DNA of 64,000 nucleotides from Thalia democratica (GCA_965202585.1 OZ241834.1:31062001-31126000); one strand, 5' to 3'. Shown: positions 28,601-43,600, numbered from the stretch's first letter. Notes: generated from the letters alone by a model not told the origin. Translations and numbers: made by a program.

Positions 28601-31600
28601 CTCGTCGTCCGTGGTGTCCAGCTTGAACCTGTCCTCGTTCTCCTTGGACACCGCCGCGGACCCGCTCTCCCTCGTCCAACGAACGGTTGGATGAGGATAT
28701 CCTGGTGTTTGAAACAATATTGAGTTTTCAAGTGAAAATACATAAAGTACAAATAAAGCATTTATGTTACTAATTAACGTGCGGCTATTGTAATTACAAA
28801 AAAAAAGCTTATTTAGTTTGTTTTTGTTGAAATTTGTTGAACTAGAAGTTTTGACAACATGCTTGATATCAAATAAAATAAAACTTTTATCTAAATTAAA
28901 AAAATTAAAGCTTACAAATAAAAAGTTTCATTACAAAAAATAATTTTAACTTGTAATTTTTTTATAGTAACCTTTAAGATGTTCCTAGTTTTTGTTTTAA
29001 TTGAAAAAATTCATATTAATATTATAAACTTTCAAAAGATAAGCTGCTTTCCTTTTATAAGAATAAGTTAAGTACAACAAAAATTTAAACTTGTATTTTA
29101 AACATCACATAAACTCACCTTTAAGATGTCCCCGAATGAGAAGGGGTGCCGCGGACTTGACGCTGAACTCTTCGCTTTTGAACACGACATCGGGTGCTTC
29201 TGTGTTGTCCTTGGTCACGTGCGACTTGATCGTCTCCTTGAAGTCGCCCTGACCCGCCTTGGTGTGCGCGCAAACCCTGAACTTGTACTCACAATCTTCT
29301 TTCAGACCTTTCACGTCGAACCTGTTGCAAAAATTTGAGATAAAAATGTATTGTTTGGTGTAAATGTTGGCGTTATATGCAAAAATAATAGTAATAAAAT
29401 TATGAAGTTGTTAAGTTAAACAAGAATTAAAGCATAATTTTCTAAATATATTTTCAATGCTTTTTATTCTAACATTTTTCAAAAGTATTTTGAAGGTAAA
29501 GTGCTTTATTTTAGCTTTAAACCGGTAAAAACTAAAAAATCTGAAATAGTTTTATATTTTTAATACAGTAAACAAAAAAAATTCAAAAATAAAATTATAT
29601 ATGTTTATAAATACAAATAATCTTTATTTTGCAACTGACGTGTTGTCGGTGCTGGATCCTTTCACGGACCAGGCGCTCTGCTTGCCCTTGGTCAGGCACT
29701 TGGCCTCGATCCGGTACTTGGTTATCTTGCTGCCGCCGTCGTTGGTGGGCGTCGACCACTTCAGCTTCGCCCCGTCCTTGCACATCTCGACCACTTGGAG
29801 GTCGGGAGGGGCGGAGGCGGTCTCGTGGGCGACGATGGCCTGGTTCGTGGTGATTCCCCTGCCGGCCCCCTTTTTGTTGAGGGCGCGCACCCTGAAGAGG
29901 TACTCTCTGCCGGGGATCATGTCTGTCACCGTCGTGTTGGTTCGGGATACCTGAGAGTTTTTTTTTTTTAATCAGGAAGTTTGGTTGACTATGATTAAAT
30001 AGTACGCGTACTTTTTATTAGTTTGTGTGTGAATTTTCAAACTTTTGTAGAATATAAATTAGTGGAGTTTTTATTTTAAATGAATAATTAAGCTTTTTCA
30101 ACTTTTTGTGTGCTGTGCTTGTACTAGTGTTACAAAATAGCTTTTGAAAGTTGTATACGACTGTTGCATAAACAAACCACAAAAAATAATTAGATTAAAA
30201 AACAATTATAACTGGTATATCCTTAAAAAGAGTTTTAAAAATATATTAATTATAATTGTTTATAATATAGAGCTTATACCTTTGCAACCGAGGTGGTCCA
30301 TACTTTCGTTCCGGACTCCTTCTTCTCGATTGTGTACCCGGTAACCTGGCAACCGCCGTCGTCGTCCGGCTCCTCCCACGTCAGGTCGGCCGTCGTCTTG
30401 GTAACCTCCCCGACTTCCAGGTCGCTGCAGGGTCCGGGGGTGTCCAGAACCGCAATGTCGAAGGTCACTTTCTTCTTACCCTGGGAATTTTGAACTTCCA
30501 GCTCGTAGGTTCCCGTGTCGGTGTAATCAGTGTCTTTTATTGTGAGCACACTGGAATTAAGTTTGATTATTTTTTGATGAATAAAAACAATGGTTGTTTG
30601 ATATTTTAAAAGTAGTATTAGCTTAAAATAATTAGTTTGTATTAAATAATAAACTAAAACTCTTTAAAAAACGATAGAATTCTAACAAGTACACAACAAA
30701 ATTGTCAATTTTATAGTCGAAACAGCAGTAAAAATACAATAATTTACCAGTGATTAAAAAATTGCTTTAAATTAATAACGTTTACTGCTAAATTTTTTAA
30801 ACGTGCTAAAAAAGGTTAACAAGTTATCTGTTAAAACTAGTGTTGTACCGGACTCACTATCCGGGTCCGGGTCCGGCCGGATATTGCCATTTTTGTCTGA
30901 TATCCGGATCCGGCCGGACTCTAATTTGAAAAAATAGTCCGGATCCGGTTCCGGCCGGATTCTAATTTGAAAAAAAAGTCCGGATCCGGTTCCGGCCGGA
31001 TTCTAATTTGAAAAAAAAGTCCGGATCCGGTTCCGGCCGGATCCTAACAGAGATCCGGCCGGACCCGGATCTAGTTAGTAAAAAAGAGCATACTGAAAAG
31101 TATTTTTTCAAAAACAAACCCTGTGTAAATTAATAAGAGTCACCTACCGTGATTGAATTAAACACCTACCGTGATTGGCTCATTTTGTATACGTGACTAA
31201 TTTACATTTGTTTACATTTAAACTATGAAATAAACATTTTAGAAATGCAACTCTTTACATATGTTGTAAAATTGAAAACTTTGGAATGAATACTTGCATT
31301 ATTTATTGTTTAACATTGAGCTCAAAGAATATTTAGAGTTAATATGGTTGAATGTACGAGTCAATGAGAATCATATGACGAAATGTTTAAAACAAAATAC
31401 TGATGCAACAAAACATCAGAACATGACAGGCAGTTTATATGTAAGCAGTTAGTTAGTTTGGTGGGCAGCTTGAAGCAACAAAATATCTTGAACTTTTTTG
31501 TAAATGCTTATTGTAAGTAGTGTTTTGTTTTAAAAGTGGATATTTCAACTAGTGTATAATTGTATAAATATTTAAGCCAGGTTTATAGTTTAATAGTTTA

Positions 31601-34600
31601 TTAAAAATTTTACAGTTTCTTCTTTACTAAAAGTTTTATTTAATTTTCAGTTTATTGTTTTAAGTCATTTGATATAGATTTAAATAGCTTCCAGTTTTTA
31701 AAGTGTTACCTAAGTAATTAATAGTTTTGTATATGCTAGTATTTCTTGTTGTGTTTTATATATAAGATTCATCACTCAAAACTGTCGTGTCTGATTATAG
31801 AAAGTAGTTTCAGTTAGGATTTAGTATTTGTTAGATATTAATTAAATAAGGTAGGATATAATTATGATGGGTAGTACTAATAAGTTAAGTGTACCACAAT
31901 CAGTCACAACTTTACTACCAAATTGTCAACCTTTGCTAGCTGTTCTACTGATTATTAGATTAAAGTAATTTTTTTCAGTTTTTAAAAACCTCATTCTGAC
32001 TCAGGCTTGTTTATACTCACTCTTGCTAGTTTTATTGACTTTAACGGTGGCAACCCTGCTAGTTTGAAAATTTTTGGGAATTTTAGAAAATCTTGGACTG
32101 CCTCAGGCTAGTTTAGTTTTTTACAAAAACTCAGGCTAGTTTTCTTTTAGATTTTGAATGAGTTTGAGCTGATTCAGTTTTCAATGTTTTGTAACTTTCT
32201 AGTGTATTTTGTTCAAGAACTTGATTTCAGATTTTTAATTGTAAATAACACCTAAATTTGTAAACCTTATGGCTAGCTGTTCTACTTATTATTAGATTAA
32301 AGTTCTTTTTTTTTTCATTTTATAAAAACCTCATTCTGACTCAGGCTAGTTTATACTAATGATGTAGCGGACTCACTATCCGGGTCCGGGTCCGGCCGGA
32401 TATTGCCATTTTTGTCTGATATCCGGATCCGGCCGGACTCTAATTTGAAAAAATAGTCCGGATCCGGTTCCGGCCGGATTCTAATTTGAAAAAAAAGTCC
32501 GGATCCGGTTCCGGCCGGATTCTAATTTGAAAAAAAAGTCCGGGTCCGGTTCCGGCCGGATTCTAACTTGAAAGAAAAGTCCGGATCCGGGTCCGGCCGG
32601 ACCCAAAATTGTGGGTCCGGTACATCACTAGTTAAAACTTAAACTTTTAGACAAACACTGTAAAAAAGTATAAAAATTAAAGCTCATTTAGTTTACTATT
32701 AATTACCTCTTGTTGTCGGTGTTTTTAATGGTCTAAAAATATTAATCAAGTTTGAAAGTTTTAACTTTTAGAAAAACACTTTAAGAAACTCCTTTAAAAA
32801 TTACAAGTCACTTAATACACTATTTGAACAAAATTTTAAGGAACTCACCTCTTGTTGTCAGTGTTTTTTATTGTCGCTCGTTCCGAAATTTCGCCGTTCA
32901 CCTTCTTCCACTTGGCGATCGGTACCGGCTTGCCCCGGATGCCCACCTCCAGCCGGATCGTCTCGCCGGCCTCGTACTTCTCCCGCGGCTTCGTCTCGAA
33001 CGTCACCGTCGGGGCGGAGTTGGGGCTCGACAGCTCTTGGGCGTCGCATAGCGGAGAAAGAATTTCCGAGGGAAGACTCGCCTCTGACGTGCCGTGCTCG
33101 TTATGAGCTAATACTCGGAATCTGTAAGTAAAAGTGTGTCAACAAAGCTGCAATAGTCACCTTTGAGTTAATTTAACCGATGCAGTTGAGTTTTTATTTA
33201 AAAATTACTTAAACTCAGTGTGATAACAAGTTGAAACGCTTTACTGCTAAGCTTTATGGTGTATTTTGCAAAACAAAAAAGCTTTAAAATGTTAGATATG
33301 TTAGTAAAAACGTTACTGTTGTATAAAGCTGTTAAAGATTTTATTTAGCAGATTTTAGTTGTAATACAATTTATCTCCAAGATTTTTTGATTATAAGTAA
33401 AAGGTGAAAATGCATTTTAAAAACTGTTATCTTATGATATAAAGCAAATTTAAACAAATAATATTTCAGATAACTTTTGCTTAATATTTAAAATAAAAAC
33501 TTTATAAACTAAAATTTTATGTTTAACTTTCATTTTAAAAGCTACTACAACATAAAAATAAATATTAGCCTCACAAAAATAGCTTACTGAATTATAAAAA
33601 CAATAAAAAGTTTAAACAAAAGTAAAAAAACAAAAGTTTTATTTTAGAAGAAAAAACTATACTGATAAAAACGTTAATACATATTCTAAAACAACTTTTC
33701 AAACAAAGACTAAAACAATTAATACTATCAACTCTAGTGTACTAACTTGTATGAGCTGTTAGGATTCAATCCTTCAGCCGTGAATGTGTTTTCTTTCAAT
33801 TTGCTCTTGATCAGCTTAAAATCGCTGTCTGAATTTTCACTCATTTCAACTGAGTAGCTCTCAGTTGCTGGTCCTCCTTCAGTCCATGTTATCGTGATCG
33901 TTTCTTTCGTCGTTCGAACGATCTTCGGACTTGAAGGGGCCTTTGGAACACCTAAATTGTTGGTTTAGTAATATATCTATATAAAAGCAAATTATTTTAT
34001 CTTTTAAATTTTTTGTGAGTAATCAAAAATCGAAAAAATATATGTAAATTAAAATGTTAACAAAAAATTCCAACGGCTTTAAAATTTTGTTTATTTTGTA
34101 TCATAACTTGTAGTGAAATCAAAACTTTCAGACTATATCAATTTAAGCTCTTAATTTTTTATAGTTTAGTTTTTATAGACATTTATAATGAAAAATTAAT
34201 TAGTTGTAAAATAATACTCTACTAGTATTTCAGATTTCTAAACATTAAAAACAAAAAATTTTTTTTTACACAAAGTCAGTGAAAAGTGCTTGAAAAAACA
34301 AAAAGTGAAAACAATATCTTAATAAATTAGTTTACTTAGCAAGCATGCTCTACATTAACTAAACCTTTTGATTATTTTTCAAAACAAAACACTAACGTAT
34401 TTTAGGAACGGCAGAAACTTGTGCGGACTCTGTCGCGCTGATTTTCGTTTCTGCTCTGACTTGTTCCGCTTTTACTGCGGAAGCTGTTTCTTTAGCTTCG
34501 CTTTTTGTTTCTGTCGTTTGTTTCTGTGGTATCGGTTTCAAGTTTACGTTTATGTCAACCGATGATGCATCACTGCCGCGTTTCTGATGCACATGCTTCA

Positions 34601-37600
34601 ATTTCGCATGCTCAATCACAGTCTCTGCTTTTTCCTTCTTAGCAGTCTTTTTCTTTTGCTTGCGTTTCAAAAGGGCCTCTTTCGCCTGTTGCAGAGCCTC
34701 GGCACCCGTCACTTCGGGGGCTGGCATCTTGGCCCTGGGCTTCTTTTTAATTTTGAGCTTGCCCGTTTTGCTCGTTTCTGAACTAGTCTCATCTTGCTTT
34801 ACGCTAAACCTACCCCCCGATGACTTTTGCAATTTTACCGAAGAGCTTTCAAACTTCGACGACGAAGTCTTCGAGCTCTTTATCTCTACCGACTTGGTCG
34901 ACCTGACCGAAGTCGAGCTTTCCTCCTGCACGCTGAACTTTGACGAACTCTTAGAAGTCTTAGTAATGCTAGAAACTTTAGTGCTGCTGCTGCTGGCTTC
35001 TGACTTGGTGAACTTGCTCTCGCCGAATGTCGAAGCCAGGAGCTTCTTGCGTTCATGCAAGCTGCTCATGTCTTCCTCGGTGTCGAAGTCGGAAGTGTTG
35101 TCGCCCACTTCCGATCCCGACCGCGCTGTAAAGTACTCTTCCTCCGCTGGTGATCTGCTTTTAGTGTTGCTTCTGCGTCTCTGCTGAAGCTCGCTGCGTT
35201 TAATGTCTGATCGCGCCTGGCTGCTTGTATTTGTCCTTGTTCGCTCTCGGCTATCTACAAGTGGTGACTCATCGTGCGCTTGTCGCGTTGCGTCATCGAC
35301 CGATGCGGCTTTGTTCTTTAGCGCCAGCGTGTCCGGCCTTTCGCTCGTTGAAATTTCGCTTTCACCTGAAACTGCTTTCGCCGAGCTAACTGAACTTTTC
35401 ACGGATTTCGACGCGGATTTTTTCACGGTTTTCACTGGTTTTTTCGACGACGCCTGCTCGGCTGCTTTCGCGGTTTTTCTGCTTCTGGACGCGCGGAACT
35501 CAACGCTCGCGACGCTTTCCTCGTCGTCATCTCTCGTGATGCTCATGACTCTGCTCCTGATCTCTTCCGGGTCTACGTCATCTAGCTTTCCCGCTTTCGC
35601 GTCTTTCAAAAGCTTTTCCGAGCTCACTGTCCTGTAAAAGTTCTTGAGCAGCTTCTTGGCCGACTTTGGTATGGCTTTCTGCTGCTCTGAAGTCGAAGTT
35701 TTAGTAAATTTTGCTGAGCTAGCCACTGAGCTCGACGACTGCTTGCTGACAACTTTCTTGCTCCTTTTCGATGCTGTTCCTGCTAAATGAACGCTGTTAC
35801 TAGCTTTTAGCTGCTGTTTGATCAACCGACTGCTCTCAGACGATCTCGTTTCCGATTTATTTTGCGCTTCCTGTTCCGCTGATAAACTGAGCTCCCCAAA
35901 ACTCGTCTTCTCAACTTCAATGCTGCGCCCTGAAACCTCAACATGCTGGCTTCTGCTCTCCTGCACCGAGCTGGAGTCTACCCCTCCCGTAGACTCCTGC
36001 TTGTACTGAAAGCGGGGCTGCTCCTGTATCTGTCCTCCCCTCTTGGACTTGTACGAAGCCGTGATCGTGCTGCTGCTGGACACCGAGTCTCCCTCAAACT
36101 CCTCGTGTCTCTGCTGCTGCTGCTGATCTGATCTCCTCTGAACCTGCCTGCTGCTGCGCGGATCCCTCAATCCTTGCAAGCTCGGCGCCTGGCTCGAGTA
36201 GCTCGATCTGCTCGGGCTCGTCGAGTACTCCCTCGACGCTGATCGTCTCCTGTACTCCGGCTGCCTCGCGTCGCTCCTCCCCCTCGACTGGCTGCCAGTC
36301 CATGCTGCTGGGGAAGGGGAGCGGGTGCGGTAGCCGCTGGGCACGATCATCGGCGACCTCTCCTGGCTCCTGCCCTGCCGGTACCCTCCCGACGGAGTCA
36401 CCGACCTTGACCTCGTGTACGAAGCACTCCTGCCGTACGTCAGCCTGGTGGCTGACACCGACCTGGGCCGGTACCTCGGCTGCTGGTACGTCCCGTAGCC
36501 GGTCGGCGTGCGCAGTCTCAACGACTGTCCGGTCGGGGTCGACGGTCTCGAGCCCGAAAAGTCGCGGTTTCTGCTCCTGAAGAGCCTCGACGGCGTCGGC
36601 GACCTGCTCGAGTACCTGAAGCTGTCCGGCACCAAAGTCCTGCCCGTTCTGCCTCTGGACGGGGAAAAAGTCGCCGCGCTGCCCCGGTACGGGCTGGAGT
36701 AGCGGCCGAGATCTAACAAATCGCTGCGCCTGCTCCTGCCAAAGTACCTGCTGTAATACGGAGTCACCCTTCTCGTCCTGTTCGGCGAAAAATCGTACGG
36801 CCGGTAAATGTACCTCGACAGCGACCTGCTCCTGCGCCTGCCGTAACTCGCCAGCCTGTCCCTCTGCTTCTGTTCCAACGACTGTTTCGCACGGCGGTTC
36901 CTTCGCGTGAACTCGCGCAGTTTTCGCGTGAACTCGTCGTCGGAACTCTGCATGGCCAGCCCGCGCGACCTGCTCCCGAACTCGGTCGGAGTTCTGGGGC
37001 GGTGCCTGCTCAGGCTCAGCGGCGAGGCCCTGCCCATTTGCATGGGAGAAACGCGGCCCTTCGTGGGCGCTTTGTGCTGACTCTTGTCCATTTTTTCAAT
37101 GGACTCTCAGCTGTGTTTTTTGCGGGTTGCAGCCAATAGGCTGTCCCTAGTTTTTAAAACTTATTTAAAAGTATATAAAAAGAAATAAAAATAAAAACAA
37201 AAATAACAAAAATCTAACTAAATAAGCTGCAAATTTAAAACCTTCTTCAAAAAAGCTGTAGCGCACTTGTTTGAGGAAACAGTGCACTACAAGCTTGCTC
37301 TGCTCAAATAATCAAAATTCGAAAAACTGCAAACGGAAAGTCGCGAGCTTTATACTCGACTCAAAGTTTAGCAGTTAGCTGCTGACAGCTCGCACTGGTC
37401 TGAAAATGAATGGCAAAGCAACGAATTTCAGCCGACAGAGAAAGAAGTAAGACCCCCCTGGGGACGATCTTAGCGCAGCTCGATGCAATCTCAGTTGCTT
37501 AATATACGACACACGTCATGCAGTGTGGTCACGTGTTTAACTTTTCAGCATCTGTTCGCGCGTCATGATAACCGAGTTTTGTAATTCCGCTTTAAATAAT

Positions 37601-40600
37601 CTGCATAAGGTAAAAGTGTTGCTCTTGTGTTTGAAAGTTGAGTGAATTGAAACAAAATGTACTTTTTGAATAGTTAAGTATTCCGAAAAAAAAGTAAAGG
37701 TGCTTATTTTAAGTACTGTTGTGAAAAAAACTATACTTATTTATTTCAAGTCAAACCTATTTTTATTGATAAAAATTACTTATTGATAACGTACTAAAAA
37801 ACTACATTTATAGAAAACTTTATGACTTATAGTGTATGAAAAAAAATATATGTAAAAATGTTTTTTTATTTCAATAGTAGAAAATATAAATATATTTAAT
37901 TTTTTAGAATAAAATAATTTGATTTTTTCAAAAACTTCTCAAGTGAACATGGCTATGCTTATTTCTACATCAAAAACTATAAAAACTTTAATTCAAAAAA
38001 AAGTAATTTTTTATGTAGAAATAAGCGTAGCCATGTAGTTTGCCGTTTTTTAATATTCAAATTTGTTTTATAAAAAAAAATACACTAGTACTTGAGTCGA
38101 AAAAGTTTTTTTTGTCTACATAGATATTTTTGTCCTAAAGTACGAACAGCTCTTAAGTTTTTTAACAACCGAAACAAACTACAATGTACAAATGGAGTTT
38201 ATTTTATGTTTAATTAGATTTTGGGTACACTATCTTAAAGCACGTAGTTTATTTCAACTGGAGTTTTTTTTTATACTGCCCAAATAACTCAAATAGTAAC
38301 ATATATTTTAAGATAATAAACTTAGAGAAATATTATTTGTATGCTCAATAATGCATTTAGTGTGCTTGCGAATGTATTAAACATCTTAATTAAATCGAGA
38401 TAAGTTGTGATTATGAATGTGTTTGACAAATGCAATTAAATTGACGCTGCATGTAAATTGTTATGTGATACTAATCATGTATTATCTAATCGAATGTTTA
38501 GTTTTGATTTAAACGCTACGCTAAAGTACTAACAATATTTGTTTAACAACTTTATGTATTTTTATTGGTATAACAGTTTTTATTGAAACAAAATATTCCA
38601 AAAAAGTTTTTATTTTAGTTTTTTGTCGATGTACGCTTAAGTTTGAAAATATTACACGATATAAATCATTTACTTTAAATTAAAAACAAGTTTTTCTTAA
38701 CTAAAGTTAAATTAGTGTATGTTTAAGAAGTTTGTTTAATTTATTTATAAAGTTTACAAGATATTTGAACTTCGTTTATATTATATAAAAAATACTTTAT
38801 GTAAGCTTTTTTGTATTACAAACAAGTCAAAAACAAATAATTAAGAAATTCTTTTTTAGGTAAAACTTTGAATAGAAATATACCTTTTTACATACAAAAA
38901 ATTTTAAGATACTCTATAAAAGTTTATTTTTATAATAAATGTTTTTTAATTATATAATTTTCTTTTAATACTGTTTTGCTTATATTTAGCAAGACATTTC
39001 GATTATATCTAATAAAATAATTAAAGATCATGATAATTACTTTGATATGATCAAAACTGGTTATTTAAATTTATTTGTGGTTATTTTGTTCGTTATAGTA
39101 AAACTTTTATGTGTGTTTGTATTTTACTTTTTTTTATAGTTTAAAACATAATAGACTAATAATATTCGACTTCTAAAATTCTAAACTAAAATATTTTTCA
39201 CGTACTAGTAAATTTAAAATATTTTAAGTATTTGTTTCAACATTTTGTTTCATTTTTCACATACATACTTGTAGATACATTCAAGCTAGTTCTGATTAAA
39301 AAACTTAAATAAAAATTATGTACAACTTAAACTATAGAAAAACTTTATACAGTTATTTTTACTTTAATAATTGAAATTGATTCAAGTTAAGTCCAATATA
39401 TTTTTCACAACTTTTTTTATTATTTTATCAAATAGTTTTAAACTTTTTTAAAGTTTACTAACGTTCACAGTAGTTCAACTGAAATATCCGTGTGTTTTAA
39501 CTTACTAGGTCTAAGTTATCTTTTAAAGAAAACACATAAACAGATGTTTAATTTTATTTATTAGATTAAACTTATAAATGAAACTTGTTTATGGATAACA
39601 CTAAAAGGTTTAAAAGTAAATATTTATTTCAAATTTTATTATAGGTCATTTAAAAAAAACAAATTATTTTGTGTAAACTTGTTTAATTTTACACTCATGT
39701 GCTGAATTGATAACTATTTTTCAATGTGAGAATCAAAGTTTATGATTTTGTTTAAAAAAACTTATGTCATTTACTTCTTGAAAAGCTTTTAAATACTGTA
39801 GAGTGTTTAAAAATATATGTCAATGTTTTGTTTATCTATATCCACAAACACTAAACACAAAATGAAATTAGAAAATATTTAAAAATAACTTAGGTTGTTG
39901 AAAATTTATAGTGACTTGTTGTTGTTGTATTTTTTTCTGTCGGAATGGGTGTTTAAGTTTTATTGCTGAAACTTTAGGAAAACTTTATGTCATCATAGCC
40001 ATATATGATATAAAGTCAAAATAGCACTTAGAAAGCATTAAGTTTAAATAAAAGTAAGTAAATATCAATAAACTAAAGTCAAAAAGCATTAAAGTCATTT
40101 TATTCAAAAGTTGATAGCTTTGTTTTATAGCTTTTTATTGGTTATCCGGTTTAAAAAATTATGTTTTTATTTAAAGTTGTACTATAAAAGTTCTAAAAGT
40201 AACGATATTTTTTATGTTTAGCTTCATTAACTAACAAATGTAAAAAAAAGGAAACCTTGTATAGATGTTGTTATTGAGTCAAAGTTTATTTTGTTTTTGT
40301 TATGTTTTAATAAAGACCAAATAAGTCTTAAAGTGGTACACTTATAAAATACATAAAGCTTATAAATTATTGCTTGTTACAGTAAGATAGTAAAATCTCA
40401 TTAGAAATTTAATTGAAGATAATAGATAAGCTGATTGTGTATACTTACTTATAGAATAATTTAAAGTAATTTCAAATATTTTGGTTAATGTGTGCGTGCA
40501 CTAATAGTTTTATGTAATTATTATTTAATGGAAAAGTGTTTGGTACCTATTATTACAGGTAATAAAAACAAACGTATATATTTATGAATTTACATTTACT

Positions 40601-43600
40601 AAAATACATTATGATACCATACCTAGATAGATAAGCTCGGAGTCATTTGTTTAAAAAAAAAAAATATTGTTACAATTAATTAATTAAACTTAAAGTAAAA
40701 TAGTTTAGAATATTTTCGCAAAAGGTGTTTTTATTAGCTTTTTTTACGAATGAAAGAACCACTAGAAGTCGCTAATTCAAAAGTTAAATTCAAACCAATG
40801 CAAAAAAAAGATAAAGTACTATTTATAGAAGAATGTAAGCAGGTTTGCTACAAAAAGTTATTGTAGTAGTTTTTAAATTATCCTCCCTATACAAAAAGTT
40901 TATCTTAAGACCAAACAAGAATAGTTCCAGATAGAAGTTTTGAAGCTTAAATGCTGCCTAACTGTATGCAACTTGAATCAACTTAAATTCAGATTAAAAG
41001 ATATAAACATCAAAGAGAAAAAAACATTGTCAAGAAAGAGAAAAAGTGTAGATCAAGGATAAATTCTTACACCAGATTCTTTTAACTTTACTAGAACAAA
41101 ATTTTGAACTAATATTTGCTTTGATTTCAGATTTTCATATTGTTCAACACCGAAAACTTTATGAAATATACAAGATATTGTAATGCAATTTAGAGAAAGT
41201 TTTATCAATATTATTGTGTATTTGTGATAAAATTACTTTAAAAAAAGAGTTTTTTGAATTGTGACGAATGACAACCAGATAGTTTAAGCAATATAATGAA
41301 CTTTTTTTTCTCATTTATTGTAAGTGAACTGGTAGTTATCTAATAATTAAAGCTTCATTTGGAGGTCTTATATCTATACCCGCTAATCATATAAAAAAAT
41401 ATCTAAACCTTCACCTTTCGACTGAAATACTATACTGAACTACAAAAGATTTTTAAAAAACTGACAACAAAAGTTACGTATAGTATGCAAAAAAAAAAGA
41501 AATCATAAGGAAAGTGCAAGATACAATGCAAGTGTTAAAAAGACATTTTAGCTTTAAACAGTAACAATGGCATTCTTTAAACTAAAAAAAAGTGAAATAG
41601 TGTGCAGAAAAATTATAAAGTTCTAATTTGTGCAGTTGTGCTTTCAATCGTGTCCACTTACGAGAAGCTTCCGAGGCGCTGAAGTCTTCTGACCCCTTTT
41701 CTTCTGCTTCTTCTGTTATTAAAATAATTTTTTAAAGTTTAATTGAGTTCTTTTTAACAACTTATGGATAAGAATCATTTTTAACAAATTTGTGGTTTGA
41801 TAAATTAGTTTATGAAATAGTTATTAGGAATAAATTTAAAATGAACTAACTCTTACTGCCATGGCTGTCAATAGGAAGTTGTTTTTGTTGCTGGTCTTCT
41901 ATCAAAACATCAGAAACAAGACACTGTTCAATATTCTCAGATTCTTTTTGAGACAAAGGTTCAAGTTTTATATCCGAAGATGTTTTCAAATCTTTATTAC
42001 TAGTGGGTTCATCAACTGCATTTTCTGCACTAGCATGACTTTTTTCATCATTTTGAGCCGGGATTGTACCCACAATTTTTTTAGAACTTTTCTTTCTTAG
42101 CACTTTTTTGTACCTTTTTTGTTTTGGCCTTTTCGCAGTATCTTCTGTTACTTCATTATTTTTTGATTTTTTTGAGTCATCAACTTTTTCAATTTCAGCT
42201 TTATCGGCAGGTGCTGTTTCTGAAACTATTTCGCCAGAACCAATAGGCTGCTTACTTTCAAAAGAGCCTTTATCACCCAAACCACAATTTTCTACCATGT
42301 CTAAATCAACTAGATCGCTATCAATTATATGTTCGCAATCTTTTATAAACACCGAGTTTGAAACGCTCCAATCGCTCAAACGGGTATCAGTTTGCGCCGC
42401 AACTCTGAACTGGTACTCGAAGCCGACCCGAAGGCCGCCGCATTTGACGCTCAACGAGTTCACTTTCTTGTTTATTCGGTACCACCTCGGTGAGTTGTTT
42501 TCTCTTTTTTCTATGAAGAAACACGTTTCATTGCTGTTTTCAATATGGTAAGCCCACTGTAGCTGTACGACGTTGTAGTTTGGTATTTGTTCAGCTAGAG
42601 TTATTTCTGGAATACTAGAAGTCGCGCTTCGTGTGGTTATTGCTTCAGAAGAAAGCGATGGACCAGAACCTACTTTGTTGCAGGCTTTCACTCTAAACAC
42701 GTACTCAGTACCCGGTTTCAAGTGTTCCACTTTGTAGAAAAGCTCTTTCACTCCGGACGTCACTGAAACTTTCAGCTTTCGTTTCCTGTCGACTTTTTCA
42801 ATGTCGTACCCTGAAATCGAACAGTTTCCTGAAAATTCCGGAGCTTCCCATCTCAGCTCGCAGCTTGTCTCTTTCACCTCTGAAACTTTTAAAACGCCAG
42901 AACATACAGACGGAGCAGTTAGAACCACAACTTTGACGTGCGCCTGGCAGCTACCTAACTCGTTTGTCGCACGGACGACGTAGACACCTTCGAGGTCCTG
43001 TTTAGCTTCGGAGAACCCAACAGAAACTTGGTTTCCCGTCCTAGTCTCCCTGAAATCACTTGGTTCGTTATTTTCCCGCGTCCAGTTTGTTATGGGGTAA
43101 GGGTGACCGGAAATGGTGGCCCTAAGATGGAACGGTTTCGACTCTTCGACTTCAATTTTTGGTGAGTCGATGACTATTTTTGGAATGGTTGGAAGTTTTG
43201 GTTGAATGAAGTTTTTGGACTGCCACAAAAATTCAGGCTCCGAGCCGGTTTCTCTGGTTATTTTGAATAAATAAAAGTGTTCTGGGTTTAAGTTTTCAAC
43301 GTTGTAAGTGTTGGACCGAGAACGGCCCGACTCGACCCAGTGTTCGTTGATGCGGTCCATATAAAAGAATACAAATTTGTCATTAGATTCGTCGGGGTTT
43401 TCAAACGTAATGTTCACCACACCGTCTCTGATGACTGCTAGTTTCGTGTCGGTGAACTCGTCATCTTCGTCTGAAGATGCTTGTATGTAGTCCACTGTTT
43501 CGCAACTTTCTCCCAACCCAATCTTGTTTGCAGCTGAAACTTTTAGCAAAAGCGGATATTTGTTAACCGGCACTGCGCAGTTAGTCAAAGCAGTTTGCTT

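Follow-up and report, generated by a model that had tools for sequence, protein, structure and literature searches.

The stretch of DNA analysed here, 64,000 nucleotides from Thalia democratica (OZ241834.1:31062001-31126000; called the window below), is a single titin-like gene region on the minus strand with many small Ig and Fn3 exons and three giant exons. Outside the window the gene extends in both directions. Its upstream part has sparse Ig domains; its downstream part, at least 80 kb long, is a regular C-zone-type super-repeat of 11 Ig/Fn3 domains. Between one of the giant exons and an Fn3 exon lie a 51-nucleotide (nt) segment flanked by splice signals, an AT-rich spacer and a long open reading frame (ORF) rich in arginine and serine (RS). 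With the C-zone-type super-repeats lying downstream, the protein head encoded by this ORF fronts A-band titin. We think it somewhat more probable than the contrary that, in the available RNA, this titin locus is expressed as two messages, one for an N-terminal titin and one for an RS-headed A-band titin.

The assembled genome (802 Mb) was compared with contigs from several sequencing runs. X6 is a run of the organism itself (47 Mb of contigs) and behaves as RNA. X1 and X2 are marine metatranscriptome data from the same sample, the strain in X1 being divergent, and X3 and X5 are DNA runs. Transcripts and DNA of close relatives occur in marine metatranscriptomes and metagenomes, and protein catalogues derived from such material were also searched.

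The upstream unit is clearly represented in RNA. Contigs of X6 join position 41851 of the 9.6-kb giant exon to position 41712 in two alleles, at a depth of 44-48, so that the giant-exon donor is the GT at 41850 and 41851 is the last exon base. An earlier note on this DNA had placed the donor at 41856; the phase that it gave (phase 1) stands and the position must be moved. The same note described the 51-nt segment that follows (41712-41662) as a microexon. As far as the sequence flanks (an AG on one side and GTAAGT at 41661-41656 on the other), the phases (1 on both sides) and the splice from the giant exon into 41712 are concerned, the description was correct. The donor that would bound the segment is not used in the available RNA, however, which reads through 41662. 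X6 contigs extend past this point (41561-41712 and 40904-41433), with a depth of 20-100 as far as about 40.75-40.9 kb and of about 0 beyond. The divergent X1 strain also passes the donor, in one contig with 41629-41692 joined to 41857-41950 and in another covering 41507-41644.

Reading through the donor adds a 26-codon tail (RKWTRLKAQLHKLELYNFSAHYFTFF), which is followed by a TAG stop codon at 41584-41582 and a 3' untranslated region (UTR) of about 0.9 kb. RNA coverage ends near 40.8 kb, where TATAAA (40827-40822) and AATAAA (40735-40730) are candidate poly(A) signals. This end is placed by coverage and motifs, the exact 3' end and poly(A) tail lying outside what the contigs show. In X6 there is essentially no coverage of 36351-40750, and RNA from the AT-rich spacer is limited to scraps whose loose ends run into unrelated sequence. 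The read-through at 41662 does not represent general intron retention, since the 138-nt intron beside it is spliced out cleanly and the 3.6 kb beyond are silent. The alleles differ by 4 non-synonymous and 2 synonymous changes in the 51-nt segment (counted from contig tables) and by 2-nt indels in the tail, which indicates that both are weakly constrained. The final 200 residues of the giant exon, a stretch rich in lysine, glutamate and serine, gave neither homologs nor fragments showing the next exon when used as a query against the protein catalogues.

The downstream unit is seen in RNA through its RS exon. This exon ends in a C/GTTAGT donor (after base 34397), which is kept in a genomic contig of a relative (L004). 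The junction 34397>33951 is present, in frame, in an X1 contig of 1207 nt, where 34395-35429 is joined without any branch to 33949-33800, and again in an X2 contig that joins 34395/7 to 33949/51. It is also crossed by P0003, an entry in a unigene protein catalogue of marine metatranscriptomes, which reads ...SAQVSAVPKIR/VPKAPSSPKIVRTTKETITI... (that is, ...SAVPKIR/VPKAPSSPKIV... across the junction). P0003 and the X1 contig end at the same residue, and P0003 may therefore not be independent of X1. Within the exon, RNA covers 34395-35605 in X1 and X2 and 35951-36328 in X6, and unigene fragments from a more distant relative match residues 107-290 of the head. The claims of the earlier note regarding the extent of this ORF, its own ATG at 37091, its length and a phase-1 donor fitting the acceptor at 33951 are borne out by the sequence, and its prediction that the exon joins the 33951 Fn3 exon is confirmed by the X1 and X2 contigs and P0003. 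The X1 junction contig rules out an independent nested gene that is not spliced to 33951.

The X1 and X2 contigs both end at 33800, within the Fn3 exon, with 19 A (T on the plus strand). We do not consider this to be a true poly(A) site: no signal lies nearby, the message would be non-stop, and the end is judged to result from oligo-dT priming on A-rich genomic sequence (AAATTGAAAGAAAACA). Internal priming, the most likely cause, would also explain why coverage of the RS exon in this sample spans 1.8 kb and is biased towards the 3' end.

Comparison of the X1 strain with the window over 34398-35429 gave 25 synonymous and 12 non-synonymous differences, a ratio of non-synonymous to synonymous polymorphism (pN/pS) of about 0.14. 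Together with its presence as a single copy in the genome, this supports the RS ORF as a real coding exon under purifying selection. An origin of the ORF, or of the promoter-like island upstream of it, from a transposon or other repeat is rejected, as both are single copy.

The encoded head of 898 residues is disordered and basic (isoelectric point 10.6, net charge +88; 19% serine, 11% arginine, 9% lysine). Residues 1-330 are rich in arginine, serine, proline and tyrosine and the remainder in serine, lysine and glutamate; hydrophobic residues are scarce. It matches no Pfam family at E<=1 and has no usable look-alike in the protein atlas. An exhaustive search of 1.84 billion representative proteins returned only three short fragments from close relatives, none of them over residues 1-106, and in a word-index search with the N-terminal 255 residues P0001 was the only match. 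A 20-mer at the start codon gave five chance matches in JGI metagenome contigs, with unrelated flanks. The head was also considered as an SR protein or RS-domain splicing factor; this was rejected, there being no RRM or other known domain beside the RS-rich region.

Table 1. Features between the giant exon of the upstream unit and the first Fn3 exon of the A-band unit, in the direction of transcription
Feature	Coordinates	Strand	Description
3' end of 9.6-kb giant exon, upstream titin unit	41851..42451	minus	K/E/S-rich low-complexity tail after the last Fn3 domain; phase 1
Intron after giant exon	41713..41850	minus	138 nt, GTTAGT...ACAG; removed in X6 and X1 RNA
Composite terminal exon, upstream unit	40750..41712	minus	51-nt segment 41712-41662, tail, stop and 3' UTR
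AT-rich spacer	37601..40749	.	GC ~0.2; no ORF >=80 aa; no Rfam family
Island upstream of RS exon	37147..37600	minus	GC 0.33-0.49 against ~0.2 around; single copy; promoter-like
5' leader of RS exon	37092..37146	minus	55 nt after the 37147 acceptor; good start context (AAAATGG)
RS-head coding exon	34397..37091	minus	2,695 nt = 898 codons + 1 base (phase 1); ATG at 37091
Intron between RS exon and Fn3 exon	33952..34396	minus	445 nt, GTTAGT...TTTAG; removed in RNA
First Fn3 exon of A-band unit, acceptor used by RS exon	33747..33951	minus	phase 1 in, phase 2 out

The RS ORF behaves as a first coding exon and not as a cassette, as the earlier note had proposed. An in-frame TGA (37109-37107) lies upstream of the ATG. 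A phase-1 donor joined to the exon start at 37146, following the AG acceptor, is out of frame and meets a stop by 37019; the frameshift that the note predicted for a splice from the phase-1 microexon is thus real in the sequence. An alternative acceptor, with its exon start at 37105, is in frame with phase 1. DNA from run X5 shows that a closely related organism (organism B) carries a 2-nt insertion (+TT) in the A-run immediately 5' of the ATG. Such an insertion breaks any frame entering through 37105, so that the sequence preceding the ATG is not coding. Splice-site matrices derived from the gene's own introns (about 50) have no discriminating power here, since the RNA-proven acceptors at 33951 and 41712 score as low as those at 37146 and 37105; without a coding term, the matrix settled on false sites.

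The island upstream of the leader matches only itself in the genome. It includes CACGTG (37535-37530), TGACGT (37518-37513) and TATAAA (37354-37349), and ends in a T-rich tract with an AG at 37148-37147. No ATG occurs on the minus strand from 37518 to the start codon. At 427 nt, this is the longest stretch free of ATG in the 4.5-kb interval; only 10 of 2000 dinucleotide shuffles equalled it, and it likewise speaks for a first coding exon. Together these features fit a 5' leader beginning in the island, which may serve as a promoter or as an outron. The haplotypes diverge at the acceptor, and there an X3 DNA contig (36454-37148) breaks off. A search of 33000-42500 against Rfam found no family, and the only tandem repeats in this interval are two short AT-rich arrays.

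Allele divergence is not uniform across the locus. Within the single runs X3 and X6, the non-coding segment 37119-37379 and the tail of the upstream unit (41209-41712) differ between alleles by about 5-8% plus indels. The RS exon contigs, unlike these, are nearly identical between alleles.

The acceptor at 37147 could also take a short non-coding exon or a spliced leader. The 16-nt Ciona-type spliced leader followed by a GT donor (ATTCTATTTGAATAAG+GT) was counted in the genome and found in 358 copies, against 0 for the reversed control. For example, one such locus (L005:1501-1518) has a U-rich stretch after the donor. These copies, and the occurrence of close relatives in marine metatranscriptomes and metagenomes, mark the organism as a planktonic tunicate that uses spliced-leader trans-splicing. 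In possessing a leader of this kind with its donor, the genome resembles that of Ciona with its trans-spliced genes (PMC1488885). The RS exon itself resembles the Ciona spliced-leader genes (PMC1488885) in having an acceptor 55 nt before its ATG and no upstream AUG; it differs from them in that no junction between leader and exon was observed. The leader copies include some that are regularly spaced at intervals of about 15 kb on one contig (C26), and a cluster on another (C4) near 80.16-80.42 Mb.

Under the reading in which the locus yields two messages, the first would carry I-band-type Ig domains and the first A-band repeats. It would pass from the giant exon (donor 41850) into the terminal exon at 41712, read through 41662, add the 26-residue tail and end at about 40.8 kb. 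The second would probably begin in the island (37147-37600), either at a promoter there or by addition of a spliced leader at 37147. Its coding part would start at the ATG at 37091 with the basic head of 898 residues, cross the 34397>33951 junction and continue through more than 110 kb of A-band titin with the 11-domain super-repeats. The thick-filament half would then not be linked covalently to the I-band half but would begin with the head as a free N-terminus, charged and probably phosphorylatable. With regard to separate genes, a terminator for the first unit and a start codon for the second are both supported, the island is a candidate promoter of the second, and no spanning mRNA was found in the one RNA run and the metatranscriptomes.

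The strongest alternative is that of the earlier note, in which a full-length titin mRNA is the major product and an internally initiated, RS-headed short isoform coexists with it, Cronos-like, the two competing for the acceptor at 33951. We regard this as unlikely. The hypothetical chain from the giant exon through the 51-nt segment to the Fn3 exon is phase-compatible and, on paper, translates without a stop, and chordate connectins have been described as single genes across the I and A bands (PMC12198301). A bridging isoform of this kind would show ...GAAGCTTCTC joined at 33951. Contigs of both X6 and X1 pass through the donor instead, X1 crosses 34397>33951 without branching, and the microexon and tail vary freely between alleles. 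Neither the contigs nor the loose ends of the available RNA (X6 and the metatranscriptomes) join 41662 to 33951, 37146 or 37105; the last two are junctions that would have brought upstream titin exons into the RS exon. A search of the protein catalogues for a microexon>Fn3 fragment, with the Fn3 exon as query, gave only P0003, which is RS>Fn3, and one genomic fragment. As the 41662 donor is unused in the available RNA, the 'full-length exon chain' and its '7.7-kb intron' become hypothetical, and competition for one acceptor is not what the RNA indicates. The full-length bridging isoform (41662>33951) is probably absent or minor.

Several points nevertheless weigh against two separate messages. 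The 41661 donor is a perfect GTAAGT in the sole phase that fits 33951. By a rough estimate, not computed, such a phase-matched donor has a chance of about 1%; it may still be in use in some tissue, or the split may be recent. X6 covers the downstream titin exons better than the RS exon: of the sampled words it contains 0.78 for the downstream giant exon and 0.39 for the RS stretch, and it has nothing over the 5' 750 nt of the RS ORF. Some downstream transcripts may thus start elsewhere or be bridging, but the shortfall could equally reflect patchy assembly at a depth of 3-4. No RNA in hand covers 36351-37550, so that neither the start of transcription nor use of the ATG at 37091 is seen. The X1 and X2 contigs and P0003 may stem from overlapping data sets. 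Finally, contigs drop rare variants and X6 is the single available RNA run of the organism itself, and absence of the bridge from these data is no proof.

It is also possible, with a considerably smaller probability, that RS transcripts derive from a distant titin promoter or from upstream read-through, 37147 receiving a far-upstream non-coding exon or a spliced leader in an operon-like arrangement. The 37147 site resembles a true acceptor (T-rich tract and a jump in composition), spliced-leader genes are abundant in the genome and the start site is not observed; yet the 3.6-kb spacer has no RNA coverage in X6, and a TATA-containing, single-copy, ATG-free island lies directly upstream of the exon. 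Tunicate operons have very short intercistronic gaps, which also counts against such an arrangement.

The least probable alternative, which we consider very improbable, treats the RS ORF as an internal cassette in full-length titin. Entry would be by the weak 37107/37106 acceptor, which makes 37105 the exon start, or by an acceptor within the ORF, such as the one with exon start 37069. Joined to a phase-1 donor, 37105 keeps the frame (C+AG = Gln, then SIEKM...), and it scores no worse in the splice matrix than the RNA-proven 33951. The insertion in organism B, however, falls between this acceptor and the ATG and breaks the frame, a TGA lies directly at the acceptor, the upstream donor is read through in RNA, and no such junction was seen.

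Expression of the locus as two messages has parallels among known titin isoforms. Novex-3 titin is a truncated N-terminal isoform produced from an alternative terminal exon. Here too an N-terminal titin message ends in the middle of the locus at an exon that provides a short tail, a stop and a 3' UTR. There are three differences from Novex-3: the terminal exon is a composite one, formed where RNA runs on past the donor of an internal exon; in the available RNA the upstream unit apparently ends in this way mainly or always; and the end falls after A-band-type repeats and not in the I-band. Cronos is an internal-promoter, C-terminal isoform of vertebrate TTN, found in zebrafish, mouse and human (PMC4720518). 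The RS-headed product shares with it the nature of a C-terminal titin without the Z-disc and I-band part, and likewise opens with a first coding exon that is unique to it, carries its own ATG and is spliced in frame to constitutive downstream exons (PMC4720518). Cronos, however, coexists with abundant full-length mRNA (PMC4720518), whereas here the full-length junction is not found in the available RNA, a minor form being possible. The start of Cronos lies in the distal I-band and its unique N-terminus is very short, whereas here a head of 898 residues joins inside the A-band part, and the internal start is a putative one. A combination of a Cronos-like and a Novex-3-like product, or an outright split of the gene, seems by analogy to fit better than Cronos alone.

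Protostomes possess split titin-like genes, namely sallimus/I-connectin plus projectin, and Ce-titin plus twitchin (PMC12198301). As in these pairs, an elastic N-terminal part and a thick-filament part would here be separate polypeptides. The protostome pairs are long-diverged separate genes (PMC12198301), whereas the two units described here are adjacent and collinear on one strand, 3.6 kb apart. They also retain a phase-compatible donor and acceptor, and the titin so divided is of chordate type, with the break inside its A-band repeats. The origin of the two arrangements, by fusion into the single gene of chordates or by division into the protostome pair, is unsettled (PMC12198301). If real, the split would offer a natural experiment on the division and fusion of such genes, and on the role of a Cronos-like product where it is the main form.

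In chordates, titin is regarded as a continuous spring and ruler extending from the Z-disc to the M-line. We put forward, as a tentative idea that we are inclined to doubt more than to believe, that the locus is a chordate titin after or during gene fission, in which no one molecule joins the Z-disc and the M-line. There would instead be an N-titin, ending in a tail that is short and variable, and a separately started C-titin with a lineage-specific head. In that case the basic head could dock non-covalently, perhaps under the control of phosphorylation, onto the N-terminal half or the tip of the thick filament. The phase-matched donor and acceptor, both still intact, might then be what is left of an ancestral single gene, or might act as a switch by which some muscles restore it. 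A separate thick-filament message and an early-ending front half, if true, would constitute a natural experiment on the need for covalent continuity. There is also a warning for annotation, in that phase-compatible exon chains in giant repeat genes may be read as one gene where the RNA says two.

Some other features of the region were recorded. Exon GC is 0.5-0.64 and intron GC about 0.2 across the whole window. In the approximate set of introns, the acceptors are mostly CAG with little pyrimidine tract and the donors are often GTTAGT. The downstream super-repeats (C10, ~30.98-31.06 Mb; L009-L011, L015-L017 and L021-L022) are nearly identical copies, in which DAGKYELTASNLSG, YEFRVSARNKSG and YQVRVIAENEVG each recur at least 6 times with a spacing of about 5.2-5.6 kb. 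Near-identity of this kind suggests that whole super-repeats were duplicated in tandem recently or evolve in concert. Finally, the intron between the exon ending at 32848 and that starting at 30550 contains a repeated unit of about 120 nt in two clusters (32624-32354 and 31129-30775). All copies of this unit, which may be a dispersed or tandem repeat element, keep an open frame (...PAGTGSGLFFQIRIRPEPDPDFFFKLESGRNRIRT...).

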